Source: Cyanophora paradoxa CCMP329
Taxonomy: Eukaryota; Plantae; Glaucophyta
Reading direction: 5' to 3'
DNA length: 64,000 bases
Assembly (NCBI GenBank): GCA_004431415.1
Contig: QPMI01000039.1
Coordinates: 186,001 to 250,000 of the forward strand
Part shown: one piece after another, positions 34,863 through 63,323 of the stretch
Layout: the number at the start of each line of letters is the position of its first letter
Numbering within the stretch: the stretch's first letter is position 1
Notes under the pieces: generated by a model
What the model saw: only the letters and a program-made list of their open reading frames with translations
Database searches by the model: none
Told to the model about the DNA's origin: nothing
Translations under genes and position numbers: made by a program

Positions 34863-34904
34863 ATTATACGCATCGGCATTAGACATCGCAGAGATAGAGA
34901 CATC

Positions 34905-36476: not shown

Positions 36477-39400
36477 TCAGAAGTCGAGTTCGCCGATGTG
36501 TGGCTCGGCGGCGGCGGCGGCCGCGACCCCGGGTTTGAGCTCGCCCGCGGCGGTGGTTTTAGAGCCCAGCACGGGCGAGACGCAGGTGGCGGCGGGGACC
36601 CCGGCGCGGACCGGCGAGATCGACCCGGGCCGCGCCCGGCTGAACCCCGCCGCGGGGGGCGAAACCGGACTAACGGCGCCCGAGGCCCCCGGGGGCGACT
36701 TGGGGGGCCTTGGGGGGGAGGAGGAGGAGGAGGCGGAGTGCCGGGTAGGGGCGGGGGCGGGAGCGGGGGCGGGGGCGGGGGCGGGGGCGGGGCCCTCGGG
36801 CCGGGAAGGGGAGCCGCCGCCTCGCGGCTCGAGCGAGCGGAGGAGCCCCTCCAGGTCGGGTACCCCCAGTGCAGCCGCGTCCTTGCGAACGAAGGCCCGG
36901 ACCTGGTGGGGGTACGTTAACGTTTGGTGGGGGTACGTGATTTGCGGTCGGGGGAGGAAGTTACCGATCCCTCGAGGGAGGGCTCTCCGGGGGCCTTCCG
37001 GAAATAGATCTGCGGCGGAGGCGGGATTTCAGATCTAGAGGTCTCGGTCGCTGAGGAGGCGCCTTCGCCAGGGTTCCAGCGCACCGTCGTGTGCGCCACG
37101 CCGACCGTTGCGCCGAATGACGACCTGAGTAAGGGCGAGGTCAGCGCGAGAGCAGCGCGTACCCCCGCAGAGGCCGCGGACCGCAGGAAGCTCGAGAGTG
37201 CATTGGTACCCCCCTGGAACTCCTCCCCCCAGCGGAGCCGGTAAGCATCGACAAGGCGATCCGTCGGAACGGACGACTGCCCCTCTCGCTCAGCCACGTC
37301 CTGCCCCTCCCAACGGTCAGATCTGAGCGGGGCGGGGGCGGGGGTACAGGAAAGGGACGCGCGACGAGGGCGGCCGCGACGCGGGCGAAGGAGGGGCCGT
37401 CCCGCTCTGGCCCCTTCGAATTCCGCCGCGGGCTCTGATCGCGGCTGCGATCGCGGCTGCGGCTGCGGCTGCGGCTGCGGCTGCCCCGGGACCGCCGCTC
37501 GCCCCTCCGGTCCTCCCGGCCCGACGAGCCCGACCTGAGGGGGGCGTGAGTCACGCCGCGGCCCCCCGGGGGTACGCGGGCCCGGCAGACCTCGACTCCC
37601 GCAGCTCGCGCTGCCGCCGGAGCTCCGAGAGGGTCCGCGGGCCCGGGGGCGAGCCGCCCCTGCGCCGGGCGCGGAGTCAGTTGTATTTCATCCTCAAGGC
37701 AGTGGGGCGGGGCGAGGGCAGCACCTGGAGCCTGGCCGGCCGCGCGGCGGGCTGCGGCTGCGGTCGCGGTCAGAGGGGGCGGGGGCGGGAGTCGGGGCGG
37801 GCGCGGGGCTCGGCTCGCCTGCCGCCCAGGCTCCCTCTGGGGCCGTCCCTCGAGACCGGCCCACGCCGCGGGCTCCGGCTGCGGCTGCGGCTCCGGCTGC
37901 GGCCGCGGGGCCCGGACCACGGGGCGCCCCGCCCCTGCCCCGGCCCACGGCGTGACGCGGTCTCTCCTCCCGTGGAAGACGGGGCTCGGGCTGCGGCGCC
38001 CTCCCGAGCGCCGCGGGCTCGCGCTGCGGCGCCCGCCCGACCGCCGCGGGCTGTGGCTCGTGCGCGTCAGCGGCAGCGCGAGCAGCAACGAGATTACCGA
38101 GCATGGCCGCACCTCGGCGGCGGGCTGCGGCTCCGGCGCCCGCCGGGCGCCGCCTCCTTGCCCTTCTCCTGCTCCTTTCCCTTCTCCGCGCCCTGCACGG
38201 CCTCCCCGGGCGACCCCTGCTCGGTCTCAACGCGGCGGGCGGCCTCGCGGAGGGCGGCGAGGTCGTCGTCGAGGGCCCCGGGCCCCCCCGCCAGCGCCAC
38301 CGCCGGCTGCCCCTGCGCCCCCGCCTCAGCCGCCCCGCCCCGTCGAAGCCGCGGCCGTCGCTGGGAGAGGGGCGGGCGGGCCTTGGCGAAGGAGACACGG
38401 ACGGAGGTGGGGAAGAGGAACTGGAGGAGGCTCGCCAGCGAGGCCGGGTCTCCCGGGCACTTCGCCCCTGCCCCCGCCCCGGCCCTCAGCGGCCAAGGAA
38501 GGCGGGCGGCGGGGGGCTGGCGGCGGGGCGGACCTTTGAAGGCGACGGCGGCTCGCAGGGCCGGCGTCACGTGCTCCTGCGGCGAGCTCGGAAGGCCGCT
38601 TCGAGAGAAGGGGGGTACTCTATACGGTACGGGGCGGACCTTGAAGGGCTTGAAGCGGGAGCCGAGCTCTTGCCCCACGAGCGCCGCCGTGACGCCCTGC
38701 GCCGTACACGTACCCCCCTCCTCGTGAGCGGGCGCGCCCGCCGGGGCCGGAAGCCGAGGCGCGGGCGCACGGCGCCGGGCTTCATCTTGGGGGCGAGGGC
38801 GCGGAGGACGGCGGCGAGGTTCTCGGCGAGGGGCAGCGCGTCCTGCGGCACCCGGCTCCAGTCCGGCACCGGCGGCGCGGCGGGCGGCGTAGGCGGCGCC
38901 GCGGGCTCCTCCGCGAACGCCTCGACTGCGGGCGAGTCACGGGCCGCGCGGAGCGGGGCGCGGAGCGGCGGAGAGTCGCGCACTGGGCGGGGGAGGCGGC
39001 TGCTTCTTGCGGGGCGGAGGGGCGAGCGGGGCGCGCCGGGCACGGCCTGCGACCCGGCGGCGCGGGCGCTGGGTACGGGTTGGGGGGCGGGGGAGATGGG
39101 GAGCTCGGGGAGGACGGGCGGGGGCGCGCTGGGGTACGCGCCCGGCCCCATCTGGGCCGAGGAAGAGGCGGCGAAGGCGGGGGCGGAGGAGGCGGGCCCG
39201 GGGGCTGCGGGCTCCGGGGCGCGCGAGGGGGGCGGGTTGGCGGCCAGCAGGGCGCTGAACGAGGAGAAGGCGATGCGGTTGGGTAGGATGGGGGGTACGG
39301 CCTTCGCCTCGCCCGCGGGGGGTACGGCTGAAGCGGCCGAGGACGGGGCGGCCGAGTGGTGGGAGGGGTGCGCGGTGGGCGCGTCGGGCGGCGGGTGCGA

Positions 39401-42400
39401 GGCGGCGGGGGCGGGGGCGGCCGGGGCGGGGGCGGAGAGGGCGAGGAGGGGGCCGGCGGGGGTGCGCGGGGTGGCGGGGCCCGACCCCGAGAGCTGCGAG
39501 GAGGTCTCGCTGCCGGGTACGTGAGCTTAGAGCTTTTACGGGGGGGGGGGGGGGGGGACCTCGGGTCGCAGTCGGAGGCGGCGGAGGTGTGGGAGGCGGC
39601 GGAGGCGGCGGCGGAGCGGCGGCTGCGCCCCGCGTGGTGGTGCGCCGCCGAGCTGCGCTTCTCGAGCTCCTCCGGCACGCTCTCGTACTGCGGGGCCAAG
39701 GTAAGCGGGCGGCGCCCGGCGGCGCTCGCTCGGGGCGAGGCGAGGCGCCTCTTTCTTTCGTATACGAATTAACAGCTCGGCAGGATGTGTTATGTACATG
39801 ATAAGTCGTGATAAGACGGGGCGAGATGGATGGCCTAAAATGTCCTTCGAAGGCGTATCTTAGAGGCGACTAAGATGGAGGGGCGGGCGGGCCTTCTTGA
39901 TGATGAAGATGAAGACACTAAGATGCTATCAAGGACGGAATTCGAAAGAGGGGCGATAAGGATAAGGGGCGTTATTATATACGTTTAGGATGGCCTAAAA
40001 TGTCTTTCGAAGGCGTGTTTAAAAGGCGACTTAGATAAAGAGACGGGCGGGCCTTCTTGTAGACGCGGTGGACGTGCTTGTTGGAGGCGAAGACGAGGTA
40101 GAAGGGGGCGTCGTAGAGGCTCGCCCCCTCCGGCACCTCCAGCCGCCGCATCAGCGCCGAGTCCTGCGCAGGGGTGAGGAGGGGGAGGGAGGGAGGGAGG
40201 AGACGGAGCGGGGCGGTACCCATTTGAGGAAGGCGCGGGAGGGGATGAGGAAGGAGCGCAGGTCGGGCTCGGCCGCCTCGTCCGCCCCCGAGCTCCGCCC
40301 CTGCCCGCCCCGCCCGGCCCCCTTAGCCCGCGGACTGCGGGACCGGCGGGGCGGGCGGCGGGGCGGACGCGGGCGTAGAGGACGAGGCGGGCGGCCTGCG
40401 CCTGCGCCTGCGCCGCGTCGCCGCCCTTCGCCTGCGCGGCGCTGGCGCACTGCACCGCCTCAGGCGGCGCCGGGCGGGCGAGGGCGGGGCGGGGCGGACG
40501 ACGGAGCGGTGGAAGGCGGCGAGGCGGGCGGCCTTCTCGTCGGCGGGGAACGCCTCCCGCACCCCGTACGCCGCCAGCAGCTGCCCCGCCCGTCGGCCCC
40601 GGCGCCGGGCGGGGCGGGGCAGCCGGGCGGGGCGGGGCGGGGACCTTGTGCTCCTCGGCAAGCTCCTCGAGCATGCGGAGCGCCACGTCGCCGTCCATCG
40701 CCTTCGTCACGCTGAACACGTCCCGCGGCCTGCCGCGTTGGCGCCGCCCGTCAGGGCGAGTGGGCAGTTGTCGTTTATCGGGCAGCGCACGGGGCGTCGT
40801 TGGCATAGTACGTGAACGGCCATGCGTTCCTGCCGTGCGTGTTTGTCAGAAACGCCGATGATCTTGAAGAGCGAAGTTCGGAGGCGCCTGAGGGTGACGT
40901 CGATGGGCTTGCCGTGCGGCGCCGCCTTCTTGTCCGCCCCGGGCGCGTGCTTCACCTTCTCCGAGAACTGTCGGCCGGGCAGCCGCGTCAGAGGCTGCGG
41001 GCCGGGTGGCAGGGGGCGCGAAACGGACCCGGAGCCCGCCCGTCCAGTTGTCGTGCTTCTTCGACGGGTTGGCGAGAGTCGTGGGGGCGGGCGCGGCATT
41101 GAGAGACGCAGACGGATGCTGGACGGAAGCGCCGCTCGTTGCCAGCCTGACGCGGGGAACTGTTTAAGGGTGCGTGCAAGAGGAATTAGTCGGATGTCGA
41201 GCGGGCGCGCACTGGGCTAGCAAGGCCTGCAGCGGGTCCTGCGTCTGCGTCTGCGGTCCCTGGTTGGGACGGGACTGGGACAGGATGCTTTCGACTGTGG
41301 AGACCAGCCCCGAGTCGGGGAGGCCTGCGTTCCTGGCGGCGCCCAAGATCCCCTGCAGCAGTCCCGGATCGATGCCCCGGGCCGAGGCAGGGGCGGACGA
41401 GGTCGCCGAGGCACCCGTCGGCGTCTGCGGAAGCTCGTCATCTCGAGAGACGCGATTTTTCGTGGGACGGACCCGCGCAGCCGGGGCGGCGAAGGCGCGA
41501 TCCATGGGCGACGAGCCGGGGGAGTACTGCGGCGTGGACGCGGCGGAGTAGGGCGTGTGCGCCGAAGGCGCCTGCGGCTGGAGAGGGCCGGTCTCGATCT
41601 CGAGGCCCCTTACCCTCGGGTCCCGCATCGCCGCCGCCCGCGGGTCCCGCTGCTGTTGCTGCCAGGAGCCCGCGGCCGCCGCCTGCTGCTGCTGCGGCCA
41701 GGCGCCCCCTGGTGGTTGTTGTTGTTGTTGCTGCTGCTGCCAATTTCCCGTCCCCGCCGCCTGTTGCTGTTGCCAGGAGCCCGCCGCCTGTTGCTGTTGT
41801 TGTTGGTGCTGCCAAGAACTCGAATGCTGTTGCTGCTGCTGCTGATGCTGCTGCCAGGTGCTCGCCGGTTGCTGGGACTGATGGTGCCACGGCGGCGCCG
41901 CCTGCCTCGGCAGGGGCGCTGTTTGGTCCTGCGGTGGAAAAGGAGGTGCCGGAGGATGTGCGGACTGCACTTGTCCGCCAGAAAGTCGGCGCCCACCGTC
42001 CTCCGGCCCTTCTGCCGGCCCTTCGCCGAACGACGGCCGCCCGCGGTCCGCTGGTGCGAGAGGCCCCGTCCTTCGAATGCCACTCTTCAGATGGTCCTGC
42101 CACGTCTTGCGGACTGGCGGTTGCGGCATTATATCTTGCTCCTGCACGCCGCGTCATTGTGGGCCGTCGACGGTGCGTTGCCAGCAAGTGCAGGCAGACA
42201 ACGTACCGCTGCTGCGCGTTTAATCCCTTGCGGCTTCCAGTTGTCGGAGGCGTATCTGACAAACCAAAGCAAGGTAAATAAATTAAACACGTGCACGAAG
42301 CAACAGTAGAATCCACGGCCTCCGCCAAACGCACTTGGGCCTCCAAGCCGGAGGCTCGGAGCTAGAAACCCACCCCGCGCTCCGCTTCGTTTCATCGTCC

Positions 42401-43973
42401 TGCAAACTCATTTGATAAGTACCGTGGCGCGAAATATAATAGGATTCGTATTCCTCGCCGTTTACCTTCCACCGCTCATCGTCGAAGAGCTGCTGGCTCT
42501 GGTACTCCGCCGCCTTGCGCTCCTCCAGCTTGGCTTCTGTAGGAGGGGGGGACTCGCCGCCCCCGGGAGACTGTCGCCCCGACTCGTCCTTGATTGACGG
42601 CGCCGAGGGAGGCGACTCTCGGCCTGCCAATGAGGAGGAAGGGGGGGAAGGGGCCGCCGCCTGCTCCTGCGACGGCGCTGAGGCCGGCGGGGACGGCGCG
42701 GAGGCGGGCGCCGCCGAGGAGAGGGACCGCGCCCGCTTGGGGAGCAGCCGCGAGGTGGTACCGGTGGGCAGCGGCGCCGGGGCGGGGGCCGGGGCCGGAG
42801 CCGGCGCGGGGGGCGCCTCCTGGGCGGGCGGCGCCTCCGGGGCGGGCGGCGCCTCCGGGGCAGGCGGCAATGGCGGGGCGGCCGGGGGCTGCGCCTGCGG
42901 CAGGCTCGCTGGGGCCTTTTCTTCGTGCTCCTCCTCCTCCTCCTCATCTTCTTCATCGTCCAAATCTATCACTCGCTTCCCCGCTGCCGGCGGGGGCGCC
43001 GGCTCTCCGTTCTGGTCAGATGCTCGCTTCAACACCGCCGGAGGCTGGTCCGAGTCGCCCTGCGCCGAAACGTAAGCTAATCGGTGCATTTGGCTTACGG
43101 ATGCGCGTGAGCCCACATGCCTTGGGCTTCCTTGGCGCTGCGCTCTTCTTTGGCTTCTTTGCAGGGCTGGATGCCACCCCGGCGCCCGAAGCTTTCTTGG
43201 CATCCTTGTCTCCAGCCGGCGCGGCCTTGCGCTGGGACGACGTCGATCGACGAAAATGACAGAAGTCCATTCCAGAGTCTCACCTTTCGCTCCTTCTGTG
43301 CCGCAGGAGCGGATTCCGCGCTCGCGGAATCTGCCGAAGGGCTTGCCGTAGAATTCGACTGCGCGGGCTCATGGGCGGGCTTTGTGGTGCTCCGACGAGG
43401 TCGTGCGCCATTGAACCACTCGTTGTCGATGATTTTGCTGCGGGTTGCGGGCCGAAGGCACGCCGGCGGCCGCTGTAAGCTCGACAGGCGAGTTGCAAGC
43501 TCGAGAACGAGGGCGCACCCGTCCACCAGCGTCTTGACGCGTTTGTAGACGATATCTCCATCAACAAGCACCGCATTGATGATCTTGTCCGAGTCCAGAT
43601 CGGTCTGTTCGTCGCGAGACGTCGACAATTCGATGAGCTGTGAACGCGGCAGTCGACGAGCGCGCCGAACGCACCACGACCTTCCTCGCGTAGCCTTCAG
43701 CGACATCAACGCCGGATCGTTGCAGCTGCGCGTGAGCGGCCTCAGGCTAGCGCGCTGCGGCGCTCAATCGGTGCCAGGCGGGATGCGCAACCTCTGCGAT
43801 GATTTCGTCTAGCGTGAGGCCCTGCAACCGTGCGACGTGCGTGCATGCGTCAGCTTTCGCGTCCGGTCGTCGCCGTCGCGGGGTCCGGCCGGCTCGCGAA
43901 CCTGGTCCGGTAGCCGATTGCATATCTCAACTATCGCGGACTTCTTGCCCTCGCCCTTCCCCTTGGGCGGCAT
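36477..43973 (-). CDS. Paralog A: wHTH-like / SIM / Q-W-rich / SPOC-like / Pro-rich / RS / LOTUS(OST-HTH)-like protein
   Basis: MPPKGKGEGKKSAIVEICNRLPDQ; GLTLDEIIAEV; IVYKR; KRVIDLDDEED; RDPR x2; HDNWTGGLR...VFSVTKAMDGDVALRMLEEL...RLAAFHRSVV...RLVLYARV...DLRSFLIP...FYLVFA; SRSRSRSRSRDRSR; FARVAAAL..VPTDRLVDAYRLRWGEEFQGGTNALSSFL; ends HIGELDF*. Confidence 0.7.
39828..40059. repeat. Intronic ~70-bp duplication that includes the exon/intron junction
   Basis: ggatggcctaaaatgtc.ttcgaaggcgt...gggcgggccttcttg occurs at ~39828-39899 and ~39988-40059. Confidence 0.8.
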
Positions 43974-44224
43974 GCCGATCGTGTCGACGGTGCTTACGCG
44001 TCTTCACGACCGATATCCCGTACCCGGATCGCGGGGTCAAGTCCCGGCCAACATTCTAGACGGCCCGCTCCCGAGCTCTGGTCGACCTCATTCAAAGCTT
44101 GTTGTAGCTAAAGGAGCGCGCCCGGTCGCCGGGGGCGACGGCCGGCCGAACAGCGCGTGGAACGCCGAGTGGCGCGCTTCGGATTCGTCACACCGAGACG
44201 CCTTGAGCTACAGCTAGCTGGAGC

Positions 44225-47200
44225 ATGAAGGAGTCGATTTCTCTGGTCAAGCGCGCGCGGGAGCTCTGCCGCACTCTGCCACACGAGGTGAACGCTTACT
44301 TCGAGTGCGCTGATCGCTGCTGACCTGCTATCAGGGCTGGACAGTCTCTCAAATCGCTAGAAAGGTCCGCTGATTGCTAATTCACGCCCCCGCGCGCGCG
44401 AGACCTGCAGAATTCGCCGTCCTGTCAAGTACTGATCGGCGCGGGGCAGCTCGGCGAGCTGCGTGGATTTAAAATCAAGGACCATTCCTACCTTCGACAG
44501 ATTCTGGTGTGTCTGGAACACCCCGCGCTAGCTCCGCTCTGCATGCGCTCACTGGCTCGTAGAGGAGCAAGGCATGCGCGGAGGTTGCTGAGGAGATCAC
44601 CGGTACCGGGGGTGACTCCATCCGGTACCGTTCGCGCAGCTCCGGCGGAAGCGAGAGCACGGGGGAGTCCGGCAAGGTGCCCCGTAGCCGCTCGCTAGCG
44701 CTGGGCCGCGCTTGACGCTGAGTGCTCCCGTCGGGCTCCCGGCAGCGCAAGGAGGCGCCCCCTCCGCAGCGGAGGGCCGCCAAGCGAGCCAAGGGCGGCG
44801 CCGGCGGCTCGGGAGGCTCCCCCGCCGCGCCCAAGGCGAGTCCGCGCCCGTGCCGGCGCCCCGCCGGCTGACGCGACGCGGGGCGGCAGGCGCGGCAGCC
44901 GGCGGCGTCGTCCTCCTCCTCCTCCTCGGCTATGGTAGACCCGGACGAAGAGGAGGACGGCGACGAGGAGGAGGAGGGAGGGGACAAGGGCGTCGCCGAG
45001 GACGAGGAGGACGAGGAGGAGGAGGAGGAGGAGGAGGAGGCGGCGGGTGTCGTGGAGGAGGAGGAGGAGAGCGACGGCGGCGGCAGCGACGGCGGCGAAG
45101 GGGCGGAGGACGGAGAGGCCGAAGGTGGCGGCGGAGGCGAAGGCGGAGGCGGCGGGGCGGAGGAGGCGATGAAAGAGGAGGACGGGACGGGGGCGGGGGC
45201 GGGCCCGCCGCGCCGGCGGCCCCTGCCCCTGTCCTGCAGGGGCCCTCGCCGCCTTCCGAGCCGGCCCGGCCGCCGGCGCCAGCGCCTTCCCCGCAAGCCT
45301 TGGCCGCCGCGCCGGCCGCCTTTGAGCGCCCGATTCGGGGCTTCCTGCCCACCCGCAGCAGGATCGTCGCCCCCCCGTCCTGCCCTCGCCGCCCCGGCGG
45401 CCTCCTCGGCCCCGCCCCAGCCGCTCGCCGCGATCAAGAAGGAGGAGGGCGGGGGGCGCGCCGCGCCGCCGCCGCCCCGGCCGCGGCGCCGGATTCTCCG
45501 GCACCGCGGGCCGGGGCGAAGGCGCCGGCATCCCCGGCGCCGCGGGCGGGGACGGAGGCGCCGCCGACAGTGAAGAAGGAGTCCACACCAGAGGCCGGCG
45601 GCCGGGGTCGGACGGCGGGCGGGGGCCCGAGCGGTGGCACGTGCGCGCCGCCCTTGCGCCCCGCCCTCCAACGGTCCTTTGAAGGCCGGCTGAAGCCTGC
45701 GCAGGACCCAGAGTTCAAGGAGGCCGCGGGGTGGGTCATGGGGAACCCGCGCGGCCGCGGCCGCGGCAACGGCCGCGGCGGCAGCGGCGGCGGCGGCAGC
45801 GGCGGCGGAGGCGGCCGGGGGCGCGGTGGCGGCGGCGACGGCGGCGGACGTGGGCGCGGTGGCGGCAGCGGCGGCAGCAATGGCGGCGGCGGTGGCGCGG
45901 CGCGAGGAGCGCGCTCGCCGGAGCCATCGCCGCGCGGGGCGGCCGAGCGGCGCAGCGGGCCCGGCGGGGACCGGGGCGGCGGCGGGGACAGCAGGGACAG
46001 CAGCGTCGAGCGCAAGGGCAGGGACGGGCCTCGCAGGGCCGCGGGGGATACCCCGATGAGGAACCTCGCCCCGGGCCAGCCAGCCTCGGGGCATCCCCCG
46101 GGGCCGCCCCAACCAGAGGCGCAGCAGCGGCCAGCGCGAAACCTGCCGCCGGCGGCGACGGCGACGGCGCCAGCCGAAGATTGGCGTCGGTACTTTGAGC
46201 ATCTGGCGGAGAAGGGGGCGTCAGGGACGGTGGCCGCGGGCGACGCCGGAGTCAGCGAGCTCGTACGGGGCCCGCTGGACCCCCGCAGGGCGCCCCGGGG
46301 GCCGGAGGCGGATGCGGCCGGCCCCGGCTCGGCCCCCCCCACCCCGGCTTTCTTGGCCTCGGGGTCGAACGCCGTACCCCTCCCACCCCGCCGCCCCTCC
46401 GACGGCGGCCTTGTTCCTGGTACCCTCGACCTGCTCCTCCCCCTCCCCGGAGCGCCTCCCGCCGGTTTCAGTACCCCCGGCCCCTCCCCTCCGCCAGCCG
46501 CCGCCGCAGCACCGGCCATCTACACGCCGCCGGCCAGCCTCAGCCCCGCCCCTCGCCCCTTCCGCACGCCCGTCGTCCCCGCCGTCGCACCCTCCGACCC
46601 CCCAGCTGCTTCGTGCGTACCCGTCTGGGCTTTCCCCCCCTCCCGCACCGCTGACTGTCGGCGTTCCCGCCCAGGTCCCCGAGCGCCGTACCCCCTCCTC
46701 CACTTCCTCCCCCGGGCCCGACCCACGACGAGTGGACGGGAGGCCTTTGGGTCTGCTCCCGCCCCGCCCCGCCCCGCCCCGCCCTGGCCCCGCGCGTCAC
46801 CCCCCCTGATTGGGAACGCGCGCAGTATGACAGCAAGAAGCTATCGATCACGCTAAAGTGAGTGAGATCTGCCGGCTCTAAGACTTCAAAGCCTTCCTCT
46901 CAGCATTCGGCGCAGGAACGCGTGGCCCTTTGCTGGATTCCGCGGCGGGAAGCCGTGCGCCATACCCCGCCGCCTCGGCGCGTTTCGTGTCGTTCCCCGT
47001 CCTGATCGAACCGTACCCGGCGCAGGCCGCGGGACGTTTTCCTGGTAGAGCACGCGTGGGCGGCGCGCGGCACCCTCGAGCTCCTCGACACCCTCGCCGC
47101 CGAGAACAAGGCGCGAGAGCGGGGGCGCCCCTCGTAGCTTTGCGTCCGCTGAGACGTGGGGTACAGCTGCTGGCCGCGTACGGGGTACGGGAGGCGTTCC

Positions 47201-50200: not shown

Positions 50201-50664
50201 CCCTCTGGGAAACCGTGAGCCCTCCTCGAATTCGAATCCCTCCCCGCGCCTGTACCCCCTCGAGCCCCTCGCAGGTGCGAGAAGGGCTGGAGGCGGACGC
50301 GGCGAGGCGCCGCATCCCCGACCTGCACGGCCTGGTCCGCTCTCTCGAGGCGTCGGCCCGGCCGCCCGTCTCGCCGCTGCCGCCGCCCGTCTCGCCGCTG
50401 CCGCCGCCCGTCTCGTCGCTGCCGCCGCCGCCCGTCTCGCCGCTGCCGCCGCCGCCCGTCTCGCCGCTGCGGCCGCCCGTCTCGCCGCTGCGTGAGGAGT
50501 GCCTCTCGGCCGGCGCCGGCGCCGGCGGCGGCCTTGGCGCACCCTCACCCCTCCGCAGGGCCCTGCAGCAGCCGGCGCCGCCCTTGTCGCCCCTCCCCCA
50601 CTCGCGGCCGGCGGGATCGGCGCCGGAGGAGGTGCCACGGACCGTGGCGGACTTGGATTTCTAA
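44225..50664 (+). CDS. Paralog B: diverged full-length paralog of A (wHTH-like, acidic, RGG, SPOC-like, RE repeats, LOTUS-like); start uncertain
   Basis: MKESISLV; GWTVSQIARK; LRGFKIKDHSYLRQIL; IRYRSR; poly-E; RGRGRGNGRGG; HDEWTGGLW; RDVFLVEHAW...LLAAYGVREAFPGDEGARRLAQFF...YIVYARV...LWSFLIS...FYLCFA; FARVAAVLL..AEQAYPARWGAPYPGG; ends TVADLDF*. Confidence 0.65.
49010..49315 (+). repeat. Coding RE/RD dipeptide repeat (EREKERDR/ERER)
   Basis: gagcgcgaaaaggagcggga(t/g)cgg recurs about 10 times. Confidence 0.9.
50360..50490 (+). repeat. Coding 21/24-bp repeat PPVSPLP, ~6 copies
   Basis: ccgcccgtctcgccgctg recurs. Confidence 0.85.
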
Positions 50665-51030: not shown

Positions 51031-51197
51031 CTCGAAGACATCCTCGGAGCCGGTCGTCCTCGGAGCTCGAGCTTGAAATCGTCTACCCGGCGTCGCCGTC
51101 ATCTCCCGCCATCGGAGTATTCACTTCAATTCGCGGCCTGCGGGCGCAGCCGACTCGTCCTTCACCGGATCCGCTGTCGAGTAGGCAAAGCATTTGG

Positions 51198-54100
51198 ATG
51201 GTTGTGGGCAAGAAGGCCGCCATCGTTGAGCTCTGCAACCGTCTTCCGGAGCAGGTTCGAGAGCCGCGCCCCGCGGCCGCCCGCGCCGCGGCGGCCGATG
51301 ACGCTCGCGTCCGCTTCGCAGGGCAAGACGATGCGTGAAATCGTCGATGAGGTGCTTGTCGCTGCGCGAGGCCGCGATATCGCGCGGCCGCGCGGCCGCG
51401 TCGCGGTGCTCACGCGGCTCCGGTCCGCAGCTGCAGCAAGGCGGAGTGGACGTCACTTCGAGCTACGTGGGCCGAGTCCTCGTGCGCCGCCCGCGCTCGC
51501 GCGCCTCGAACAGCGCCGGTTCGTCGCTCACGGCGGCCTGGGACCGTCGGCCGCGCGCGGGCAGAACGAGCTGGACGGGGACAGGGTCATCCGCGCCGAG
51601 CGCGACGAAATCCTTTGCCAGATCGTCTACAAGCGCGCCAGGACGGTGGTGGACGGCCGCGGGTGCGCCCCCGCGGCCGGGAAATTCAAAATCCTCCTGT
51701 GCATGAGCACGTCTCCCGGCTTCAAGCTCACGGGCGGGGGCTCCGGCCCATCCTCACAGCGGCGTCCTCGACAACTCCGGACCCTGGTTCGATGGGCGGC
51801 GGCCGCGGCGGGCCGCCAGCGCTCCGAAGCCGCCCCAGGACTTGGAGGACTTGGGCGACATCCCGGCCCCCCTCAGCAGCTCCGAAAAAGAAAGGAGAAA
51901 GAAGCGGAAGGTGAGCTTTGATGAATCCCTTCTGAATCGTGTATGACCGCGTCGCCCTTCTGATCACCTTCGTCGCAGCACAAGGGCGCGCGCTCTGGAC
52001 AGGCGGACTCATTCGCCAAGAGAGCCGGCGCCTCGGGCACCGATGTCGACAGGTCTAGAGGCCCAAACATCGCGATCAACACGCCCCAAAAGGGCGCCAG
52101 CTCGGTGCGAGCCCCTCGAGGGCGGCGGCCGCCTGAAACCACGCTTCACCTCACTTCTCTTCGCCTGGGGCGCAGGGCGGCTCGAGCTCCGCGCCCCCGT
52201 CGACGTTGAAGAAGCGCGTGATCGACCTGGACGATGATGACGAGGACGACGACGATTGCGATGTCGACGTAGCGATCTCCTCGCTGAAGAAGAAGCCTCG
52301 GCCGTCGGCTGTGGGGCCCTCTGAGGGCGACGACGACGACGAGCTCCCTCTTTCAAAGCTGAAGGAGAAGCTTCGAATTCAGCGGGCACGCCGCGGCCGA
52401 TCGGTCCCTGTTTTGAAGACGAAATCCAAGCAGGCAAGCCGATTGGGACCGGCAAAGGGCAAGGATCCTCTGATGCCAGCTTATGACCAACTTCAGCCGT
52501 CGACCCTGGTGCCCACTGCTTCGCCCCAGCCGCCTCCGGCGCCTGCTTCTATCAAGCTGGAGGAGTCGCCGGCGCCGACATTGCCGCCTGCACATGCTGC
52601 TGGGATCAAGCTGGAGGCGTCATCTTCCAGCAAGCCGGAGCCCCTGCCGGCGAGCTCTGGGCCCTGTACGACGTCTATCTCGGAGGGGGCGTCGGCCGCC
52701 GGGCAGCCTGCCGCTCGGGCGCCGGCTCCCGAGCCCGAGCCCGAGCCCAAGCCCGCCCTGCAGCTGCTCGTGTCGCCTGCGGCTGCTTCGGAGCTCGAGG
52801 TGAAGGCAGAGGTGCCGCCACCCACGCCCGCCTCAGCCGCCCTAGGCCCGCCAGTGCCGCCCGCCCCCAGTTTGCCCCCCGCCCCGGAGGCGCCCCCCGT
52901 GCCGGCTCCGGCCCCCAGTCCCGCCCCGGGGGGCCCGGCGCCGCTGCCCACCGGTACCACCTCGCGGCTGCTCCCCAAGCGGGCGCGGTCCCTCTCCTCG
53001 GCGGCGCCCGCGCCCGCCTCAGCGCCCACGCCGTCCCCGCCGGCCTCAGAGCCGTCGCGGGAGCAGGCGGCGGCCCCCTCAAGATCCCCTCCCCCATCGA
53101 AGTCCAAGATCGATACTGGAGATCTAGAGCAATCTGGACCTCTGAAGAAGGTAAGCAATGCAAAATGCTGAAGGCGCGATCGCGAGTAGACCCAATAGAA
53201 ATTAAATTTGCTGCGCAGGGTCAGGAGCGAGGTTCCTGGCCGAGCTGGAGGGGCCCCCAGTCGCAGTCGCCAGCCCGCGAGACGTCGCCCGACCAGTTCA
53301 AGGGCGCGCGGCCATCATGGGGCTCGCGAAACTCGACGGGCACGCCGTCGGCGGGGCTGAAGGTCAGCTGGAGTCGGTTTTCGCGGGGCGAGGCGCGAAT
53401 TTCGCAGCAGCCGAGGTCAGGTAGCACCTACGACCACGAGCACCGCAATGCACAGCGTCAGTGGCGCGGGCAGCAGCCAGCAGCTGCAGCTGCAGGTTAC
53501 ATGGGACTAATTGGAAACGGGGTAGGGCCCCCGTTTTCGGTAACTCACAAAATGACGAGTCTGCTCATCTCCCGATCCAGCTTTGAGCTCTTAACCGAGT
53601 GTTATTGCATGCATGAGAGCCCGGAATTCGTTGTCAGAACCCGGAAAGAGTGGAATGCTGCGCGGAAAAAAGGACCGGACCCTTTCCCGGACTTTCCCTT
53701 GCAGCACCCGATCCTGTGGTCGTATAGCGACCGGACCAAGTGCATCAGAATGCTCTTGGAATGCTCTACATGGCATGTCATACATGCCAGGGGTCGGGGA
53801 GCGGCGCGCGGCGCGCTAGGCCGCCTCAAGTACCTGTTGTACCGGGCGCCGAAAAAAAGCGCTCCTGCGAGGCCAATGCCGATATAATGATGCAGTACCC
53901 AAACTTCGCCCCCCCTCAACTTCGTTCTCATCGGTGTTCAACGTGGGCGGCAGCGTGGAGCAACAGAGCTGCCACCAGACATAGCTGTAGACGAATTTGA
54001 GATGTGCTCGAAGCAATGTGGACACAGTCGGGGCTGTGCTCCCGGTGGGAAATGTGTGCGATGCGGAGAGCGTTGCAAGTTTCCGAAGAGCCTGTACCAG

Positions 54101-56738
54101 CATATTCGGCAGTGCAGGAAGAAGGCACCCGCAACGCCGTTCCGGTGCGCGAAGCTGCGAAGCCGAGTGCGACGATGGTCCTCACCGCCTAGCCCGCCGC
54201 GAGCAGAACCGAGCGTGGCGAATTCCATCTCTTCTACAGGCAGGCATGAAGAGAGCTCGCGTGCCGACCGCACAGCTGGCGCCGATGGTAGTTCCTGCGC
54301 CTCGCGCGCGCCGCCACCCACGGTTCTGACTCGGCTGCTCGGGCGCAGAGGGCGCAGGCCGCCCGCCTCGTCCTCTACGCCCGCGTCCGCCCCGCCCGCC
54401 CCGCCGGCCCCGCAGTCCGCGGGCTGACGGGCGGGGCGGGCAGGGGCGGAGCTCGGGGGCGGACGGGGCGGCCGAGCCCGACCTACGCTCCTTCCTCATC
54501 CCCTCCGGCGCCTTCGAGAAGATGGTTTGCAGCTTCTGTTCGAGAGCTCAATGTGGCGCGAAAACGTGATGGGCATTCGCACAGGGTACAGCGCTGATCC
54601 GGCGGCTGGAGATTCCGGCGCCCCTCGGCATTTCGGATGCGCCCTTCTACATCGTTTTCGCGCGGGGCGCAGACGTGCACCGCGTTTACTCGAAGGCGCG
54701 TCGCCCACCTCGTTCTAGCGTCCGGACATTGCCCCAAATCCGTCTTCCTTCTTTTGTATCTTCTATTGACGCTCGCCCTGCAGAACGAGATCGAGCGGCG
54801 GGGACCCGTTGCTGATCATGAGGCCTCGGCCCTCGCGCCGTCGTCGGCGCAGCACAAGGGACTAGCGCGTACGGTCGAGACCATGGTCAAGGCTCTCGCG
54901 GAGTCTGCCGCCGCGGCCACTCCCGCCGCCCCCGCCTCCGCCGCCTCCGACTGCGACCCGAGGTACCCCCCCCCCCCCCACCCCCCACCCCCCACCCCCA
55001 CCGCCTCTAAGCTCACCACAAAGCTCACGTACCCGGCAGCGAGACCTCCTCGCAGCTCTCGGGGTCCGGCCCCGCCACCCCGCGCACCCCCGCCGGCCCC
55101 CTCCTCGCCCTCTCCGCCCCCGCCCCCGCCCCGCCACCGCCGCCTCGCACCCGTCGCCCGAGGCGCCCCACGCGCACCCCTCCCAGCACTCCGCCGCCCC
55201 GTCTTTGGCCGCTTCAGCCGTACCCCCCGCCGTGCTCGCGGAGGCGGACGACGCCGCGGGCGAGGCGACGGCGGCTACCTTCGAATTTTCAGGCGCAATT
55301 CTGCCTGCCAACGCCCCTCCGGATCCCTCGGAAGCCCTCTCCCCTATCCCTCTCGCGGTTCTCGTGGAGCCGTACCCCGCCGCAGAGCCGGCCGCTTCCA
55401 CCCCGCGGCCGCTCCCGGCCCCTGAGACGACCTGCCTTCCGGAGCGGCCGCCCGAATCGGCGGCCGGCTGGGACGCGGCCCCGCCCGGCGTACCCCGCTC
55501 CCGCCCGCCCGCCCGCAAGAAGCCGGCCCAGTGCCCGGGCTCCTCCCCTCCCCCGCCCCCGCCCCTGCCCCGGCTCGCACCCCCGGCGCCTGTCGGTACC
55601 GGTGGCCCCCCGGCGGCGCCCGACGGGAGCGAGAAAGCTGAGGATGCGGGGACGGGGGAGAAGAAGGGGCCCGGCGGGCCGGAGGGCCCCAGCGCTCTGC
55701 GCATTCCTCCGTGCGCCTGCGACACTCGCCGCTTTCTTAAGCTTCGATTTCCATCTGACGATTTGCTTGTGGTGCCGCGCAGCGGAGGCTGCGTGCAGGG
55801 TGCTTCTGTCCCTTCGCTTGGCTCAATTCCCAATGGCAAGGCGACCCCAGCGGCGCCGCCGGCGGTCCTTCCTTCCGCGACCGCCGACGCTGCGGCCGCC
55901 ACGACCAGTACTGCGCCCGCGGCCGCTGCCCCGCGATCCCTGCCGATATCGAGCCGAGTGAGCTCCCTGCACTGCACCCCCGGGGCCCGCTGGGCCACAG
56001 CGTCCGACAACCTCCGAATCCTACACCCCCGCCAGAATCTGGCACTTCTGCGGCGCCTGACGGGGACGCGTACGTCCCAGGCGGTTGGCCATGGCCCGGC
56101 CCCAGCGGGGGGCCTCCTAGCCCGTAGGGATGCTCTTTCCCCCCCGCCCACCCGCAATGACGACGCCGATGCGGACACGGAGGGCGCGCCGTTCAAGTAC
56201 GTTAGGGCCGCCCCGCGACTTGGCAAAGGGATTTTCGAATTCAGTTTCTCCCACCAGAATTTCGTTCATCGGCGTGGTCGGAGCGGGCCCCACGGGAACG
56301 GGCACGTACGCGTATGCCGCGGTACCGGTGCGGCTTTCTCATTTCCGTTTATACAGATGCCCCTCCGAAGCTAAGTCTAGTCGCCGCAGGAGGGGGCGAA
56401 TCTGCAGCCCGCTGGCCATGGGGACGTGGAGTCATCGATATCGCACCCCCTCGGCGATCGCGAGCCCACTGGAGCGAGGGAGGCGGCTGTGGATCTCGAG
56501 GCGCCCCGGTGGCCCCAGCAGCAGCCGCGGCCCCAGCAGCCTCTCCCCCGCGAGGCCCGCGCGCCGCGGGCCGGGCTCTTTCTCGACCCCCCCGCCCTTG
56601 CGGCGGGGGTACGCCCCGGCGCGGCCGGAAGCGATCTCGCCCCTCCGCGGGCACGCGCACGTCGGCCCGGGCCCTGTGCATGTCTCCGTGTCCCCTTTGG
56701 GGGCGCCCGCGGCCAGCGCCTTAGCTATATATAGCTAG
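51198..56738 (+). CDS. Paralog C: wHTH-like, SIM, Pro-rich, remodelled SPOC-like; no RS or LOTUS-like tail seen; 3' end uncertain (56374-56738)
   Basis: MVVGKKAAIVELCNRLPEQ; GKTMREIVDEV; LQQGGVDVTSSYVGRVL; IVYKR; KKRVIDLDDDDE; TGTTSRLLPKRARSLSS shared with A; ARLVLYARV...DLRSFLIP...FYIVFA. Confidence 0.6.
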
Positions 56739-57136: not shown

Positions 57137-57390
57137 GCGTGCTCGGCTGCGGGCAGCGGCGCACGCGGTACTGCGGTATAAGCTCGATTTCGGCGGCGTG
57201 CTGAGCGCAGCAAGAGAGCACGGTCTGGACGGCCGGGCGTGCTCGGCTGCAGCTGCGATCAGCGGCGCAGCTAGCTATAGGCAGCGGCGCAAGCGGTTTT
57301 GCGGTGCAAGCTCAAGCACGACTGCCGGGCAGCGTGCTCGGCTGCGGGCAGCGGCGCGTGCTCGGTAGGCGGTGCTGCGGTGCAAGCTTG
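57137..57390. repeat. Degenerate ~95-100-bp intergenic repeat, 3 copies
   Basis: cgtgctcggctgc(ggg)cagcggcgc...gcggt...gcggt.caagct recurs. Confidence 0.7.
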
Positions 57391-57521
57391 ATGCAGTGAG
57401 AACTAGAATTTTCGAAGTAGTCCAGGCGGCACGGGTACCGTGCGGCGTACTACGGTACGCGGCGCATGCGCAGTGCGATGAAGCGGAAATCTAGAGGAGA
57501 CAGCTAGGGAGAAGTGGTTCC

Positions 57522-57860
57522 ATGCAGAAGCGCGCAAGGATATCGATCGAAGAGCCCGGAGTGCACGTGAGACTCGGTGAGAGAGAAGTTGGTTTTCCCC
57601 TCGAAAACCACTTTTCGCGAGTTCGAGAGAGCTCTCGCGAGCTCGAGTTTGACGCTCGAAAGTCGAGGGCTGACCGGTTCACCGAGCCAATCAGAACGAG
57701 AATAACCCGTCATTTTTTTCCGGTGTTGCATACTGGACCTCGCAAACGGCCTCGTAGCTGACGTAGAAAAAGTTTGGCTGAAGCGAGGGAACGGGAAGCA
57801 AGCTGGGAGAAGCCCTTCGGTCTTCGTCCCCCCTTGCAACTATGATTACTATGATACAGG
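57522..57860 (+). CDS. Possible small spliced ORF or gene fragment
   Basis: MQKRARISIEEPG|gt and ag|ADVEKVWLKRGNGKQAGRSPSVFVPPCNYDYYDT look exon-like. No homology recognised. Confidence 0.2.
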
Positions 57861-58268
57861 CGCCCGGCCGGATCGACGCGCACGGCGGCTAGAGCGGCGT
57901 CTGTGCATGCGCATGTGCCCGGCTCGCGGTTTCCTGTACGCTGCGGGCATGGATAAGGAGGGAAGAAGGAAAGTTTAAATGCGTAGGAGTTAAAGGCCGG
58001 GGAGGCCCCTAGGGTACGTATATACGTCGGTCAGATGAGAAATCAATTTCCCTAGCTAGGCCTCGGATTCCGATCCTCCCTCCTTCGAATTGCCCCTCCT
58101 GTAAATTGTCCCCTTAATATTAATCCGTCGCGATCGAGAAGTTATGTAATTAGAGGAATAAAATTCCCCTTTCACTAGTATACGTATACTGGCAATTTTC
58201 CCCTCAATCCATCGATCGTTCGTTCGGCTACGTACGCGTTGGGCGAAGGCGCCGTAGGGCCAGGCCGG

Positions 58269-61200
58269 ATGCCGCCGCGGCGCAGCAGCAAAGGCAAAGG
58301 ATCCGGAGAAAGCGGCAACGACGGAGGCGCCGGCGACAAGAAGGAGAAGGCTCCAAAGAAGGCAGCAATAATCGAGCTCTGCAAGCGGCTGCCAGATGGG
58401 GTTCGAGGCCTGGTGTCGTGCGCGCTCCGGAATGCGAACGCTGACGCTGTGCGTGCGCGCGCGCGTCGCATATACAGGGCCTGAAGCGCAGCATGAGATC
58501 GTGGAGGAGGTGCGCATGCGCGCGGCCGGGGCCATCGCGCCCGACCAAGCCCTCTTTCTGCTCGACCGTCGCGCTGAAATAGTTAACGTCAAGCGCCTCT
58601 TTGTGTGCAGCTGCGTCAAAACGGAGTCGACATCAAAGACAAAAATTATGTGAAAGATGTCCTCGTGCGCTGATCATGACCTAGGCCTCCCCGAGCACCG
58701 CGACGCTCTTCTCTTCAGCACACGCCTGTGCATGTGACGCACTTGTCTCGCGCCGCATTTATACGTGCTTGCAACAGAACAATCTGGCGTCAGGGCCACA
58801 CGCGATCATCAAGAAAATTGAGATCCCTAGGAGCAAGAATTCGACGCAGTTCGCGTTCGTTTACAAACGCATCGACGATGAGTGCGCTCTCGGTCTAGTT
58901 TCGCTATCGCAAAACACTGATTCGCTTCGAATTCGTCCCAAATTAAACAGTTCGTCGACGACGTCGACGCCCCTCCGGGAGAGCGCACAGCAGAGCGCAC
59001 TCCCAGCGCATCCTGCGTCCGGGGAGCTCACTCACCACGCTCCGGATCAAGCCCCAGCGGAGCGAAAACGGGTGAGGGCCGCGTCTCCAAAACTTCTATC
59101 CCCTATATATTTCGACTGATTTATCTCAGCGCAAGACCGCTCCGGCGGAAGGCAAGCTTAAGGGCCGAGCTGCGAAGAAAGCGGCCGGGCCGAGTGGAAC
59201 CTCTCGCCCCGCAACGAAGGCCGCACCATCCACGAGCGCACGAGCTCGAGCTAAGGCGAGTGGCCGTATGCATGGGCCCCGTGGCCCTCCGCCCGCAAGA
59301 TCGCGAGCTCGAGATATATAAATATTCAAATAAATCGATCATCATGATTATTATCGATGCGAGGCGCAGGTCGCTTCAAGCTCCGCGCGCCCGTCGGCCG
59401 CAATTTCGCGTTCGAAGAAGAATCGCGTGGAGAGCTCCCGCACCGCCAAGAATTCGAAGGCCAGATCTAAAACGAGTGCAGCCTCGAAAATGGCAAGTGC
59501 ACGCGGGCTCGAGCTGACCTTGCGCCGCCCTAGACTCTTATCGAATTTTAAATGCATTCGTGACGCCCGTTCATGTTAAATTTATTCAACCGGTATCGGT
59601 GCATGTGTTGTGAGGCGCCGGCGCAGGTCGCTTCGACTGCAAGTTCCGCGCGCCCTTCGGCCGCGAATTCGGGCTCGAAGAAGCGCGCAATCGATCTGGA
59701 TGATGATGAGGACTCGGATGGCTCGATCGATATCAACGTCCCTCTCTCTACATTGAAGCGGCCGCGGCGCTCGGGGCCGGCGAAGGGCGAGGAGGCCGTG
59801 CTCGAGGGAGAGGCGCCGGCGGGGACCAGCGCCGATGCCGATGCCGACTCGGCAGCGGACCTTGAGGCCATGCAGGCCAGCTGCAGCTCAGCTCCTCCAG
59901 CGCTAGCACAGCCGCATGCGCCGGCGCCTGCAGACCTGCATGAGCTGCCCCCAGCACCGAAATCGCCTCCTCCGTTGGGTCTACCGTTCGAATTCGCCCC
60001 GGCTCGCCCGCAGTCCCCTCCCACCCCGGGGATGCGGTCTGCATGCGCAGCAGCCCCCGTTCCCGAAATCTCTCCCACGCCCAAGATGCCTTCGCCTGCC
60101 CCGGAGGTCCTGGCCGCGGGTCCGCCGCTCCGTTCTCGGGCTTCCGTGCCGTCGCGCCTGCTTCCCAAGCGGGCGCGGCCTCTGTCTTCGGCGCCGGTGT
60201 CCGCGTCGACGGCCTCCTACGGATCCCGAGCAGCGGGCCATGCCCGAGAGCAGGTGCACACTCCGTGTTTTAGAATTGGGTTCCCCATCAGCTCGAGCTC
60301 TGCTTCGAAACTGAAGTATTGATTTGTTTCGCAGCCCTCATTCTCGATGGCTAGGGATGCACCAGCTGCGCATTCTGCTGCAGCCTCATCGAATTCCGCC
60401 GTGTCAACATGCGAGCAGGTTCAAACGCTACGTATACGTTCAATCTAGGTCGCCTGATCACGATTCACTCTGAAATATTAAATATTCCGTTTAGCGGGAT
60501 CCGGAGGCGCCATCGACAACATCGTCGACGTTGACAGCTGCGCCGGCAGCAGCATCGATATCGTCTCTTGCCGACGTCGTGTCAGCATCTGGGCAGGTGC
60601 ATCTCGTCCGTAACTCTGCTAGCGCTAGCGCTTTGACGTTAATTTTGATCTGTTATCCCACGCTAAGTTTGCATAAAAAAAGATTACACGCGCGCTATGA
60701 CAGTTATAATATTTTTGCAGGACCAGCAGCCCATGCAGGAACTCGAGCCAAAGCCGCCAGTACGCAAGACCTGGCAGGACCGCCTCAGCGGCAACAGTGC
60801 ACGTGTACTCCCAGCGAACCTTCCGAATAATTCGGAAACAGTCGCGAGAGTGCACGGGGCGCGCGCCTCTGCAGAGCGCGAGACAGCAGCCGCGGGCCCC
60901 ACGAGCACCACACGCCAGGAGACCCGCTCTTATCACGACGCGTTTCCGCCACAGCCGAGCTCGGGATCAACTGCAGGGCCAACAGCACCACATGATCAGC
61001 CACGCTTCGCCGCCGCGGGCGCCCGCTCAGGCTCAGGCAGCCGGCAGGACTACTGGTCTCATGATCAGTCCAGCTGGCAGCATTCCCACCAGGCGTGTCG
61101 GGCTCCTTTCAGCAGCAGCAGCAGCAGCAGCAGCAGCTTCCGGCGGCCGCCGGGGCCTGTTGCTGCTGCACCCTTGCCACATGCGCAGCAGCAGCAAGCA

Positions 61201-63323
61201 GGCCTAGGCTCTTGGCCACGGCTGTCTACGCAGGTACGCTTTCTGAGTCGATTTCTTTATTGTTTTATACGCTTTGATGGGCGCATTATATATACAATAA
61301 ATGCAAATGTTCTTTAAAATATTTTCCTCTTTTGCTCATGATCAGATGTCGGCCACTTCTGGTGTTCCGAACCCCAACGTCAACTCCATGCATGCGCCTG
61401 CTCCCAATCAGGGCGCCTGGCCACATGTACAGCAGCAGCATGATCAAGCAGCGCCCCTGCCGAGGCAGGCGGCGCCGCCGTGGCACCATCAGCCCCAGCA
61501 GCCGGCGAGTTCTTGGCAGCACCAGAAACATCAAGAGGCTGCGGGCTCCTGGCAGCAGCAACAGGCGGCGGGCTCCTGGCAGCAGCAACAGGCGGCGGGG
61601 ACGGGAAATTGGCAGCAGCAGCAACAACAACAACAACAACCAGGGGGCGCCTGGCCGCTGCAGCAGCAGGCGGCGGCCGCGGGCTCCTGGCAGCAACAGC
61701 AGCGGGACCCGCGGGCGGCGGTGATGCGGGACCCGAGGGTGAGGGGCCTCGAAATCGAGACCGGCTCTCTCCAGCCGCAGGACCCGCTGCAGGCCCTGCT
61801 AGCCCAGTGCGCGCCCATCCGACATTCGAACAATAATTCCTCTTGCACGCGCCATTGAACAGTTTTGCGCGCCAGGCTGGCAACAAGCGGTGCTTCCGTC
61901 CAGCAGCCGCCGGCCTCTCTCAATGCCGCGCCCTCCCCCACGACTTTCGCCAACCCGTCGAAGAAGCACGACAACTGGACGGGCGGGCTCCGGGTCCGTT
62001 TCGCGCCCCCTGCCCCACCCGGGCTGCGGCCTCTGACGCGGCTGCCCGGCCGGCAGTTCTCGGAGAAGGTGAAGCACGCGCCCGGGGCGGACAAGAAGGC
62101 GGCGCCGCACAGCAAGCCCATCGTCGTCACCCTCAGGTGCCTCTGAATTCGAACGTCGCTCTTCAAGATCATCGGCGTTTCTGACAAACACGCACGACAG
62201 GAACGCGTGGCCGTTCACGTACTATGCCAACGACGCCCCGTGCGCTGCCCTACAAACGACGACTGCAGCTGCTTACTCGCCCTGACGGCCGGCGCCAACG
62301 CGGCAGGCCGCGGGACGTTTTCGACGTGGCGAAGGCGATGGACGGCGACGTGGCCCTCCGCATGCTCGAGGAGCTCGCCAAGAAGAAAAAGGTCTGGAAT
62401 ATTTCTGTACATGTGCTCTTCTTGCGAGTTTATATTGATCGCGAATCGATATCATCGCTCGATCTTGAGCGCTACAGATTGTGGCGGCCTTTGGCGTGCG
62501 GGAGGCGTTCCCCGCCGACGAGACTGCGAAGACAGCCGACTCTTTCTACAACTTTGTGGTGCGCCACGAGTTCTATTCTCCAAAGAAAACAAGAATCGGC
62601 GCTCACCGGTCCTCAACGCTGATCATTTGTCGCTGGCAGTGCTCGTCGCAGGGCAAGAATGGCGGCGCGGCGCAGGCGCAGGCGCAGGCCGGCCGCCTCG
62701 TCCTCTACGCCCGCGTCCGGCCCGCCCGCCCGGCCCGCCGGCCCCGCAGTCCGATCCGCGGCCTGAGGGGGCGGGTCGGGCAGGGGCGGAGCGCGGGGAC
62801 AGAGCAGACGGCCGAGCCCGACCTGCGCTCCTTCTTAATCCCTTCCAGTGCATTTCTCGACTTCGTGAGCGATCGCGAGTTTTGCAGCGCAAGCGCCTCG
62901 CGATCGTCCGGAAACTCTGCCGGGGGCGCAGGGCACGGACCTGATCCGGCGGCTGGAGGTCCCCCCGCCCCTCAGCATTTTCGACACCTCGTTCTACCTC
63001 GTGTTGGCGAGCAGCAAGGACTTCCGCCGTGTGTGCAAAAAGGTGTGTAAATGCGCATGCGTACCACGCCTCCTACGAATACTCCACCATGGCCGGGGCT
63101 GACGTAAATTCGAAGCTGATCATTAATATTGTATACGTATTAAAAAATGAGAGAGAGCCCACCGCGGTGGCCCACCCCTCTCCACCACCCCCATCCCCTC
63201 ACCCCCTCGCTTACTGCACCAGCCCTAGCGTCCACCCCACTCTCCCTTCAACCCCGCTCTCTCGTTACGTCTACCCCGCTCTCTTGTTACGTCTGCCGGC
63301 CTTTTCCCTAGGTCAAAGCCTAG
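58269..63323 (+). CDS. Paralog D: wHTH-like, SIM, Q-W-rich, SPOC-like; apparently ends just after the SPOC-like domain
   Basis: MPPRRSSKG...KKAAIIELCKRLPD; HEIVEEV; LRQNGVDIKDKNYVKDVL; FVYKR; KKRAIDLDDDED; HDNWTGGLR...DVFDVAKAMDGDVALRMLEEL...DLRSFLIP...FYLVLASSKDFRRVCKK; putative last exon VKA* at 63312-63323. Confidence 0.6.
61448..62382 (+). repeat. High-identity inverted copy of 40655-41920 (paralog A) lacking 41239-41571
   Basis: Exons and introns are both alignable as reverse complements, e.g. gaagcacgacaactggacgggcgggctccgggtccgtttcgcgcc. Confidence 0.9.

Follow-up and report, generated by a model that had tools for sequence, protein, structure and literature searches.

A tandem four-gene family in Cyanophora paradoxa with a central domain that may be SPOC-like

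Four paralogous genes with shared exon boundaries

The window analyzed here, a stretch of 64,000 nucleotides from the glaucophyte Cyanophora paradoxa CCMP329 (assembly GCA_004431415.1, contig QPMI01000039.1, positions 186,001 to 250,000), contains a cluster of four neighboring intron-rich genes over about 25 kb, designated A (minus strand), B, C, and D (plus strand). The window has a G+C content of ~ 70%, lower around gene D (0.59–0.63), and many short introns, a eukaryotic gene structure. Genes A and B are arranged head to head, and the 251-bp spacer between them is likely a shared bidirectional promoter. The parts of the four genes, with B the most divergent copy, are as follows.

43973-36477, minus strand: gene A, from ATG at 43973 to TGA at 36479-36477, placed by three-frame reading, splice sites, and spliced models
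43482-43973, minus strand: N-terminal module of A, exons 43973-43902, 43821-43792, 43725-43681, and a fourth from 43637
40053-41146, minus strand: central domain of A, exons 41146-40888, 40729-40645, 40580-40500, 40449-40369, 40300-40220, and 40163-40053
37395-37510, minus strand: Arg/Ser dipeptide run of A (approximate limits, from the translation of 37144-38226), directly upstream of the LOTUS-like segment
36965-37392, minus strand: LOTUS-like segment of A, first helix at 37392-37348, then 37300-36965 read as one exon; pattern common to B
36477-36902, minus strand: last exon of A, with a conserved helix (36902-36828), a Pro-rich tail, and a terminal ELDF before the stop; matches B 50182-50349
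43974-44224, no strand: 251-bp spacer separating the start codons (ATG positions) of A and B, which are divergent
44225-50664, plus strand: gene B
44225-44676, plus strand: N-terminal module of B, exons 44225-44287, 44335-44364, 44450-44506, and 44563-44676
46675-47739, plus strand: central domain of B, exons 46675-46857, 47026-47110 (GC donor), 47167-47247, 47326-47382, 47460-47561, and 47629-47739
48134-49400, plus strand: low-complexity region of B, in putative frames, Arg/Ser-rich at ~ 48134-48463 and with Arg-Glu/Arg-Asp/Lys repeats at ~ 48990-49400
49834-49863, 49926-50041, and 50121-50214, plus strand: LOTUS-like exons of B
50275-50664, plus strand: last exon of B, with the conserved helix (50275-50349), PVSPLPPP repeats, and a terminal DLDF before the stop
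51198-55230, plus strand: gene C; similarity to A runs to at least about 55230
51198-51254, 51322-51351, 51431-51475, and a fourth from 51565, plus strand: N-terminal exons of C
54017-54178, plus strand: Cys/His-rich piece of C, in place of central exons 1–3
54349-54384, 54444-54524, and 54585-54695, plus strand: central exons 4–6 of C, the only ones present
54784-54962, plus strand: exon of C after the central part
58269 to 63042 or 63323, plus strand: gene D, a short form lacking the Arg/Ser-rich and LOTUS-like tail
58269-58400, 58478-58509, 58611-58658, and a fourth from 58778, plus strand: N-terminal exons of D
61876-63042, plus strand: central domain of D, exons 61876-62136, 62307-62391, 62478-62558, 62640-62714, 62784-62864, and 62932-63042, all introns GT-AG
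63312-63323, plus strand: possible final mini-exon of D, four codons
40887-40886 and 40052-40051, minus strand; 47111-47112 and 54696-54697, plus strand: GC donor sites

The four genes are paralogs, with a similarity far beyond chance. A six-frame motif search located WTGGL, AYGVREAFP, YAR, and FYLxFA at 41046-40086 in A (minus strand) and at 46733-47706 in B, the variants AFGVREAFP and FYLVLA among the motifs of D (61976-63010), and only the YAR, SFLI, and FYIVFA part in C (54376-54660), placing every motif where an initial annotation of this DNA had reported it. That annotation had written the motifs as a single string; the motifs themselves are real, while the string crosses five introns and is not contiguous coding sequence, and the V of its 'YARV' is not a coding residue, as it corresponds to the first intron codon (the GT donor) in all four genes. 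Self-comparison with blastn aligned A with D at 90% identity over 606 nt and A with C at 93% over 214 nt, along with several shorter tracts, and tblastn with the spliced central models as queries returned, within the window, A–D at 3e-47, C–A at 6e-17, and B against A or D at 2e-7 to 3e-6, with no further copies. A WTGGL at 51996 in gene C is taken as a chance occurrence, given its position upstream of the acidic patch and the lack of similarity on its flanks.

The N-terminal module comprises four exons with identical boundaries and intron positions in all four genes. The first is the ATG exon, which closes with ..C-x-R-L-P-[DEH]-x; the second, a mini-exon of ten codons, has the pattern G-x-T-x-x-E/Q-I-x-x-E/K; the third, 15–19 codons long, has the pattern L-x-x-x-G-V/F-x-I/V ... 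Y; and the fourth carries I/F-x-Y-K/R. Local alignments of the module scored z = 15–28 among A, C, and D and z = 4–5 for B (300 shuffles), bearing out the earlier proposal that A, B, C, and D have this module in common. In A, the residues of the module suggest a basic tail, then a pattern like that of a helix-turn-helix, and an IVYKR motif resembling a beta-hairpin.

The central domain, ~ 190 residues spread over six exons, is common to A, B, and D with the same exons and phases, and C retains exons 4–6 only, in agreement with the initial annotation, which had assigned C the second half. In B, C, and D, the spliced region translates in a single open frame, and splice sites and phases are consistent across all copies; D is the cleanest copy and ends soon past central exon 6. 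Exons are 10–87 codons long (19–87 in the central domain). Four of the 21 central-domain donor sites are GC (after exons 1 and 6 in A, exon 2 in B, and exon 6 in C), each with GT in a paralog at the same place, and GC-AG introns seem common in this genome.

Downstream of the central domain, A and B continue with Pro-rich sequence, an Arg/Ser run, a LOTUS-like part, a helix, and a last exon. The Arg/Ser-rich stretches, the LOTUS-like segment, the conserved 25-residue helix, and the terminal LDF motif are found only in A and B. In B, the positions 48990-49362 form a tandem repeat of ~ 48-bp units that encodes the Arg-Glu/Arg-Asp/Lys repeats in one frame, and the PVSPLPPP repeats of the last exon are in tandem at 50361-50491. 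A short basic motif, ..LLPKRAR-x-LSSA.., is conserved in the linkers of A (42650-42850, minus strand), C (52856-53077, plus strand), and D (~ 60200, plus strand), and looks like a nuclear localization signal.

Patchwise gene conversion and fast divergence

Comparison of A with D revealed that the segment from exon 1 through intron 1 to exon 2 of the central domain is 88–94% identical, intron included, and that exon 4 with intron 4 is ~ 83% identical. Since introns lie inside the 88–94% tracts, the copies exchange sequence in patches, that is, by patchwise gene conversion. Away from the obvious conversion tracts, conservation is higher in exons than in the adjacent introns, with scores for A against D of 0.72, 0.79, and 0.69 for exons 3, 5, and 6 and 0.40, 0.44, and 0.52 for introns 2, 3, and 5. 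Ratios of nonsynonymous to synonymous substitution (dN/dS) by the Nei–Gojobori method over exons 2–6 were 0.50–0.59 among A, C, and D and 0.83–1.10 for pairs with B, indicating weak constraint and fast divergence, and these values are inflated because a strong G+C bias at third codon positions (GC3) depresses dS. Of what had been proposed for this cluster, a true tandem family and a remodeling of its copies, in patches, are supported.

One frame disruption was found in each of A and D. Gene A has the full architecture and differs from D by a 2-nt deletion near 41010, in central exon 1 just past WTGGLRVRF; a 34-nt intron that would repair the frame was rejected, since the other introns modeled here are at least 50 nt long. 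In D, the second mini-exon (58478-58509) is 32 nt instead of 33 nt, so that one nucleotide is missing from the frame at a G-run. The modeled exons of B contain no frame disruption. Both disruptions fall within runs of C or G; since long-read assemblies produce indel errors in such homopolymer runs, each may reflect either an assembly error or a young lesion.

Some further features of the window lie outside of the four genes. The spacer downstream of gene A (34000-36400) has a low G+C content (0.54) and contains direct repeats (34906-35121 and 35187-35407, 91%) as well as a short inverted repeat (35037-35115 and 35393-35315). A 5.9-kb unit is present in two tandem copies, 18427-24294 and 24323-30200, with 99.8% identity, either a very recent duplication or an assembly repeat. 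Long tandem arrays occur at 12739-14720, 983-1754, and 14933-15321, the first with a period of ~ 60 bp and 94–97% identity over 2 kb and the second with a period of ~ 138 bp. Scans of the window for tRNA genes and Rfam families gave no match.

Database searches and comparison of the domains with SPOC and LOTUS proteins

Searches were carried out with exons and contiguous in-frame pieces that held at most half of any domain, so their negative outcomes are weak with respect to distant homology. Pfam searches with raw open-reading frames, single exons, and 149 stop-free coding-strand pieces of all four genes produced nothing above noise, the only near-signal being the Cys/His-rich piece of C (54017-54178) with zf-TAZ (E 0.054, 14.4 bits, below the cut-off of 25). 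The Pfam SPOC family is PF07744, which belongs to a clan with Ku, MED25 ACID, and Sld7. Neither SPOC nor the OST-HTH or winged-helix families matched any of the 149 pieces or single exons at E up to 10, and TFIIS_M, PHD, and RRM as well as transposase, integrase, and capsid families were likewise without a match in the 149 pieces. Among Protein Data Bank sequences, no solved SPOC chain was recovered with exon profiles or in-frame three-exon pieces. A 289-residue in-frame piece of B found no relative among 1.84 billion representative proteins, its one match, P0001, being rejected as a repeat artefact, and a word-index search with a 193-residue in-frame piece of D gave 1802 candidates, none of them at E up to 10. 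A protein-pattern scan of metagenome contigs found nothing, with 14 matches to the degenerate pattern A-[YF]-GVREAFP set aside as chance occurrences in unrelated context; viral contigs gave no match and the ESM Atlas no usable match. At the level of sequence, the description of the family as undescribed thus holds, as no relative or known domain appeared in Pfam, the Protein Data Bank, the 1.84 billion proteins, the ESM Atlas, or the metagenome and viral contigs.

SPOC domains are distorted seven-stranded barrels with helices, and their binding of phosphoserine needs one arginine (SPEN R3552 or PHF3 R1248) that is conserved in all but SPOCD1 (PMC10111866). A crude strand and helix propensity over the A/B/D alignment of the central domain gave six or more strand-prone blocks separated by helix-prone ones, the strand-prone blocks being WTGGL-x-V, I-x-V/ITL, A-A-F/YGV, LV/IVYA, SFLI, and FYL-x-F/L. 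The arginine of PRDVF, directly past the third block, is invariant in A, B, and D, and in a tentative, not computed alignment to PHF3 it would lie in the block of the key SPOC arginine. The order of the central domain also presumably resembles that of the PHF3/DIDO blocks (I-G-G-R-I, F-H-P-A-x-E-E ... Y-x-Y-F, G-V-V, D-L-Y-L-I-P-L, L-G-L-V), a resemblance that serves as a lead and not as a test. A single-sequence AlphaFold model of D exons 3–5 with retained introns was uninformative (mean predicted local distance difference test score, pLDDT, of 39.6). We consider a SPOC-like fold of the central domain somewhat more probable than its absence.

Compared with the known SPOC proteins, both of the TLD-SPOC type (PHF3, DIDO, SPOCD1, Bye1) and of the RRM-SPOC type (SPEN, RBM15, FPA), the family has a domain of comparable size with a W-x-G start, a like order of strand- and helix-prone blocks, and, under the tentative alignment, an invariant arginine in the phosphoserine-arginine block, all within a long disordered protein with RNA-type low-complexity regions. 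Unlike them, it gave no match to SPOC in Pfam, and neither a TFIIS-like nor a PHD or RRM domain could be found. Nearly all SPOC proteins are of these two types, with a few lineage-specific partners (API5, F-box-like, and DUF3715) (PMC10111866), and whereas none of these architectures has a helix-turn-helix-like or LOTUS-like partner (PMC10111866), the present family appears to have both. The TASOR-type SPOC-like domain (DUF3699), from silencing complexes, offers no more than an analogy, being a divergent barrel missed by SPOC profiles in a long disordered regulator of chromatin or RNA; unlike TASOR, the family has no DUF3715/PARP-like domain, and there is no sequence match between the two.

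The residue pattern of the N-terminal module fits a winged helix-turn-helix, and its last exon in A, C, and D gave no Pfam match. The tail of A and B resembles a LOTUS domain in its residues: a helix and a short strand precede Y-x-x-x-W/F-G, GG, and L-x-x-F/L-L-x-S, in that order, after which come strands, in a part that is not alike in the two genes, and an additional conserved helix. Among LOTUS/OST-HTH proteins (TDRD5, TDRD7, Oskar, MARF1), this pattern is found together with an extra helix, as in the extended LOTUS, while the family departs from them in having no Tudor, NYN, or RRM partner and no Pfam match to OST-HTH (PF12872), whether with A 36965-37300 or with the pieces of B as query (E up to 10). 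A single-sequence AlphaFold model of the A piece was one long helix with a predicted template modeling score (pTM) of 0.34, and was uninformative.

A possible nuclear adaptor family and its rivals

The reading that we tentatively favor, at somewhat less than even confidence, is that of a lineage-restricted, tandemly duplicated family of multi-exon genes encoding long, mostly disordered, nuclear-type proteins, for which we infer fold, expression, nuclear location, and binding. Such a protein would start with a Lys-rich tail and a ~ 95-residue module with the pattern of a helix-turn-helix with a wing, followed by an acidic patch and a long Pro/Gly/Arg-rich linker, and then by a mixed alpha/beta domain of ~ 190 residues whose motif order could fit a SPOC barrel: a W-x-G-G-L strand, TL[RK]-PRDVF and a helix, GVREAFP-x-DE and a helix, an LV/IVYAR strand, an SFLI(P/S) strand, and an FYL-x-F/LA strand. 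The long copies, A and B, would add Arg/Ser- and Arg/Glu-rich stretches, the LOTUS-like segment, the conserved helix, and an acidic-hydrophobic C-terminal LDF tail. As a nuclear adaptor, the protein would use its central barrel to dock, in the manner of SPOC domains, on a partner's phosphorylated or acidic peptide, while the basic tail and helix-turn-helix-like module, and in A and B also the RS-like and LOTUS-like parts, would contact nucleic acid or a helicase, so that the flanking modules would link the partner with RNA or chromatin. Competition for the barrel could come from the acidic LDF end, and D, as the short copy, and C, with its half domain, could be variants or decoys, or could be decaying.

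A more specific form of this adaptor model, which we regard as possible and rather doubtful, is that of a glaucophyte-restricted winged-helix, SPOC, Arg/Ser-rich, and extended-LOTUS protein, tandemly expanded and homogenized by gene conversion, in which the barrel would serve as the reader of a phospho-mark and the LOTUS end as the recruiter of RNA or a DEAD-box helicase, and the LDF tail could be a built-in ligand of the barrel. The last idea is drawn from the analogy of SMRT/NCoR, whose C-terminal LSD motif is bound by the SPOC domain of SPEN. A link of the family to silencing or genome defense, also suggested in the initial annotation, is speculation.

Several of the results above weigh against the adaptor model, namely the missing Pfam matches to SPOC, OST-HTH, winged-helix, TFIIS-like, and RRM families, the missing SPOC chains among Protein Data Bank sequences, the tentative status of the residue-level match to SPOC, the dN/dS values, and the frame disruptions in A and D together with the loss of half of the central domain in C. 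An alternative is that the family is real and expressed and that the central domain is a lineage-specific fold unrelated to SPOC, with the winged-helix, SPOC, and LOTUS labels being pattern coincidences in an orphan, largely disordered protein. This explanation, which we hold to be rather unlikely, draws on the empty searches from Pfam to the viral contigs and on the ease with which short hydrophobic motifs such as FYLVFA and SFLIP are matched by eye, but six motif blocks occur in SPOC order with an arginine at the expected block, the alternation of strand- and helix-prone stretches agrees with a helix-bearing barrel, and the searches were mostly made with partial domains.

A further alternative is a decaying cluster, in which recent duplicates that are mostly pseudogenes, or becoming so, would owe their similarity only to gene conversion. 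The 2-nt deletion in A, the shortened second mini-exon of D, the absence of central exons 1–3 from C, and dN/dS of 0.5–1.1 would all be explained in this way, as would the absence of a transcript-derived protein from the 1.84 billion representatives and the word-index search. We nonetheless consider decay unlikely, as frames stay open and splice sites and phases are preserved in every other modeled exon of all four copies over ~ 25 kb, the exons remain better conserved than the introns, both disruptions fall in homopolymer runs with B undisrupted in its modeled exons, and dN/dS is inflated by the GC3 bias. It is very improbable that the genes are part of a mobile or virus-derived element: the copies are in tandem with patchy identity, and the G+C content is lower around D, but the genes contain many short spliceosomal introns, viral contigs gave no match, and no piece matched a transposase, integrase, or capsid family.

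If the central domain is not SPOC, the cluster would represent a fast-evolving orphan family of limited general interest, which would nevertheless show a divergent four-copy cluster being kept partly homogenized by gene conversion and a need to allow GC-AG introns in the annotation of this genome. If it is a SPOC barrel, the family would be the first in which SPOC is combined with a winged-helix-type module and a LOTUS domain, and would extend the reader of the phosphorylated carboxy-terminal domain (CTD) and corepressors to a setting of RNA or helicase recruitment, within one of the three lineages with primary plastids, with the long, short, and half-domain copies forming a natural series for dissecting its modules.

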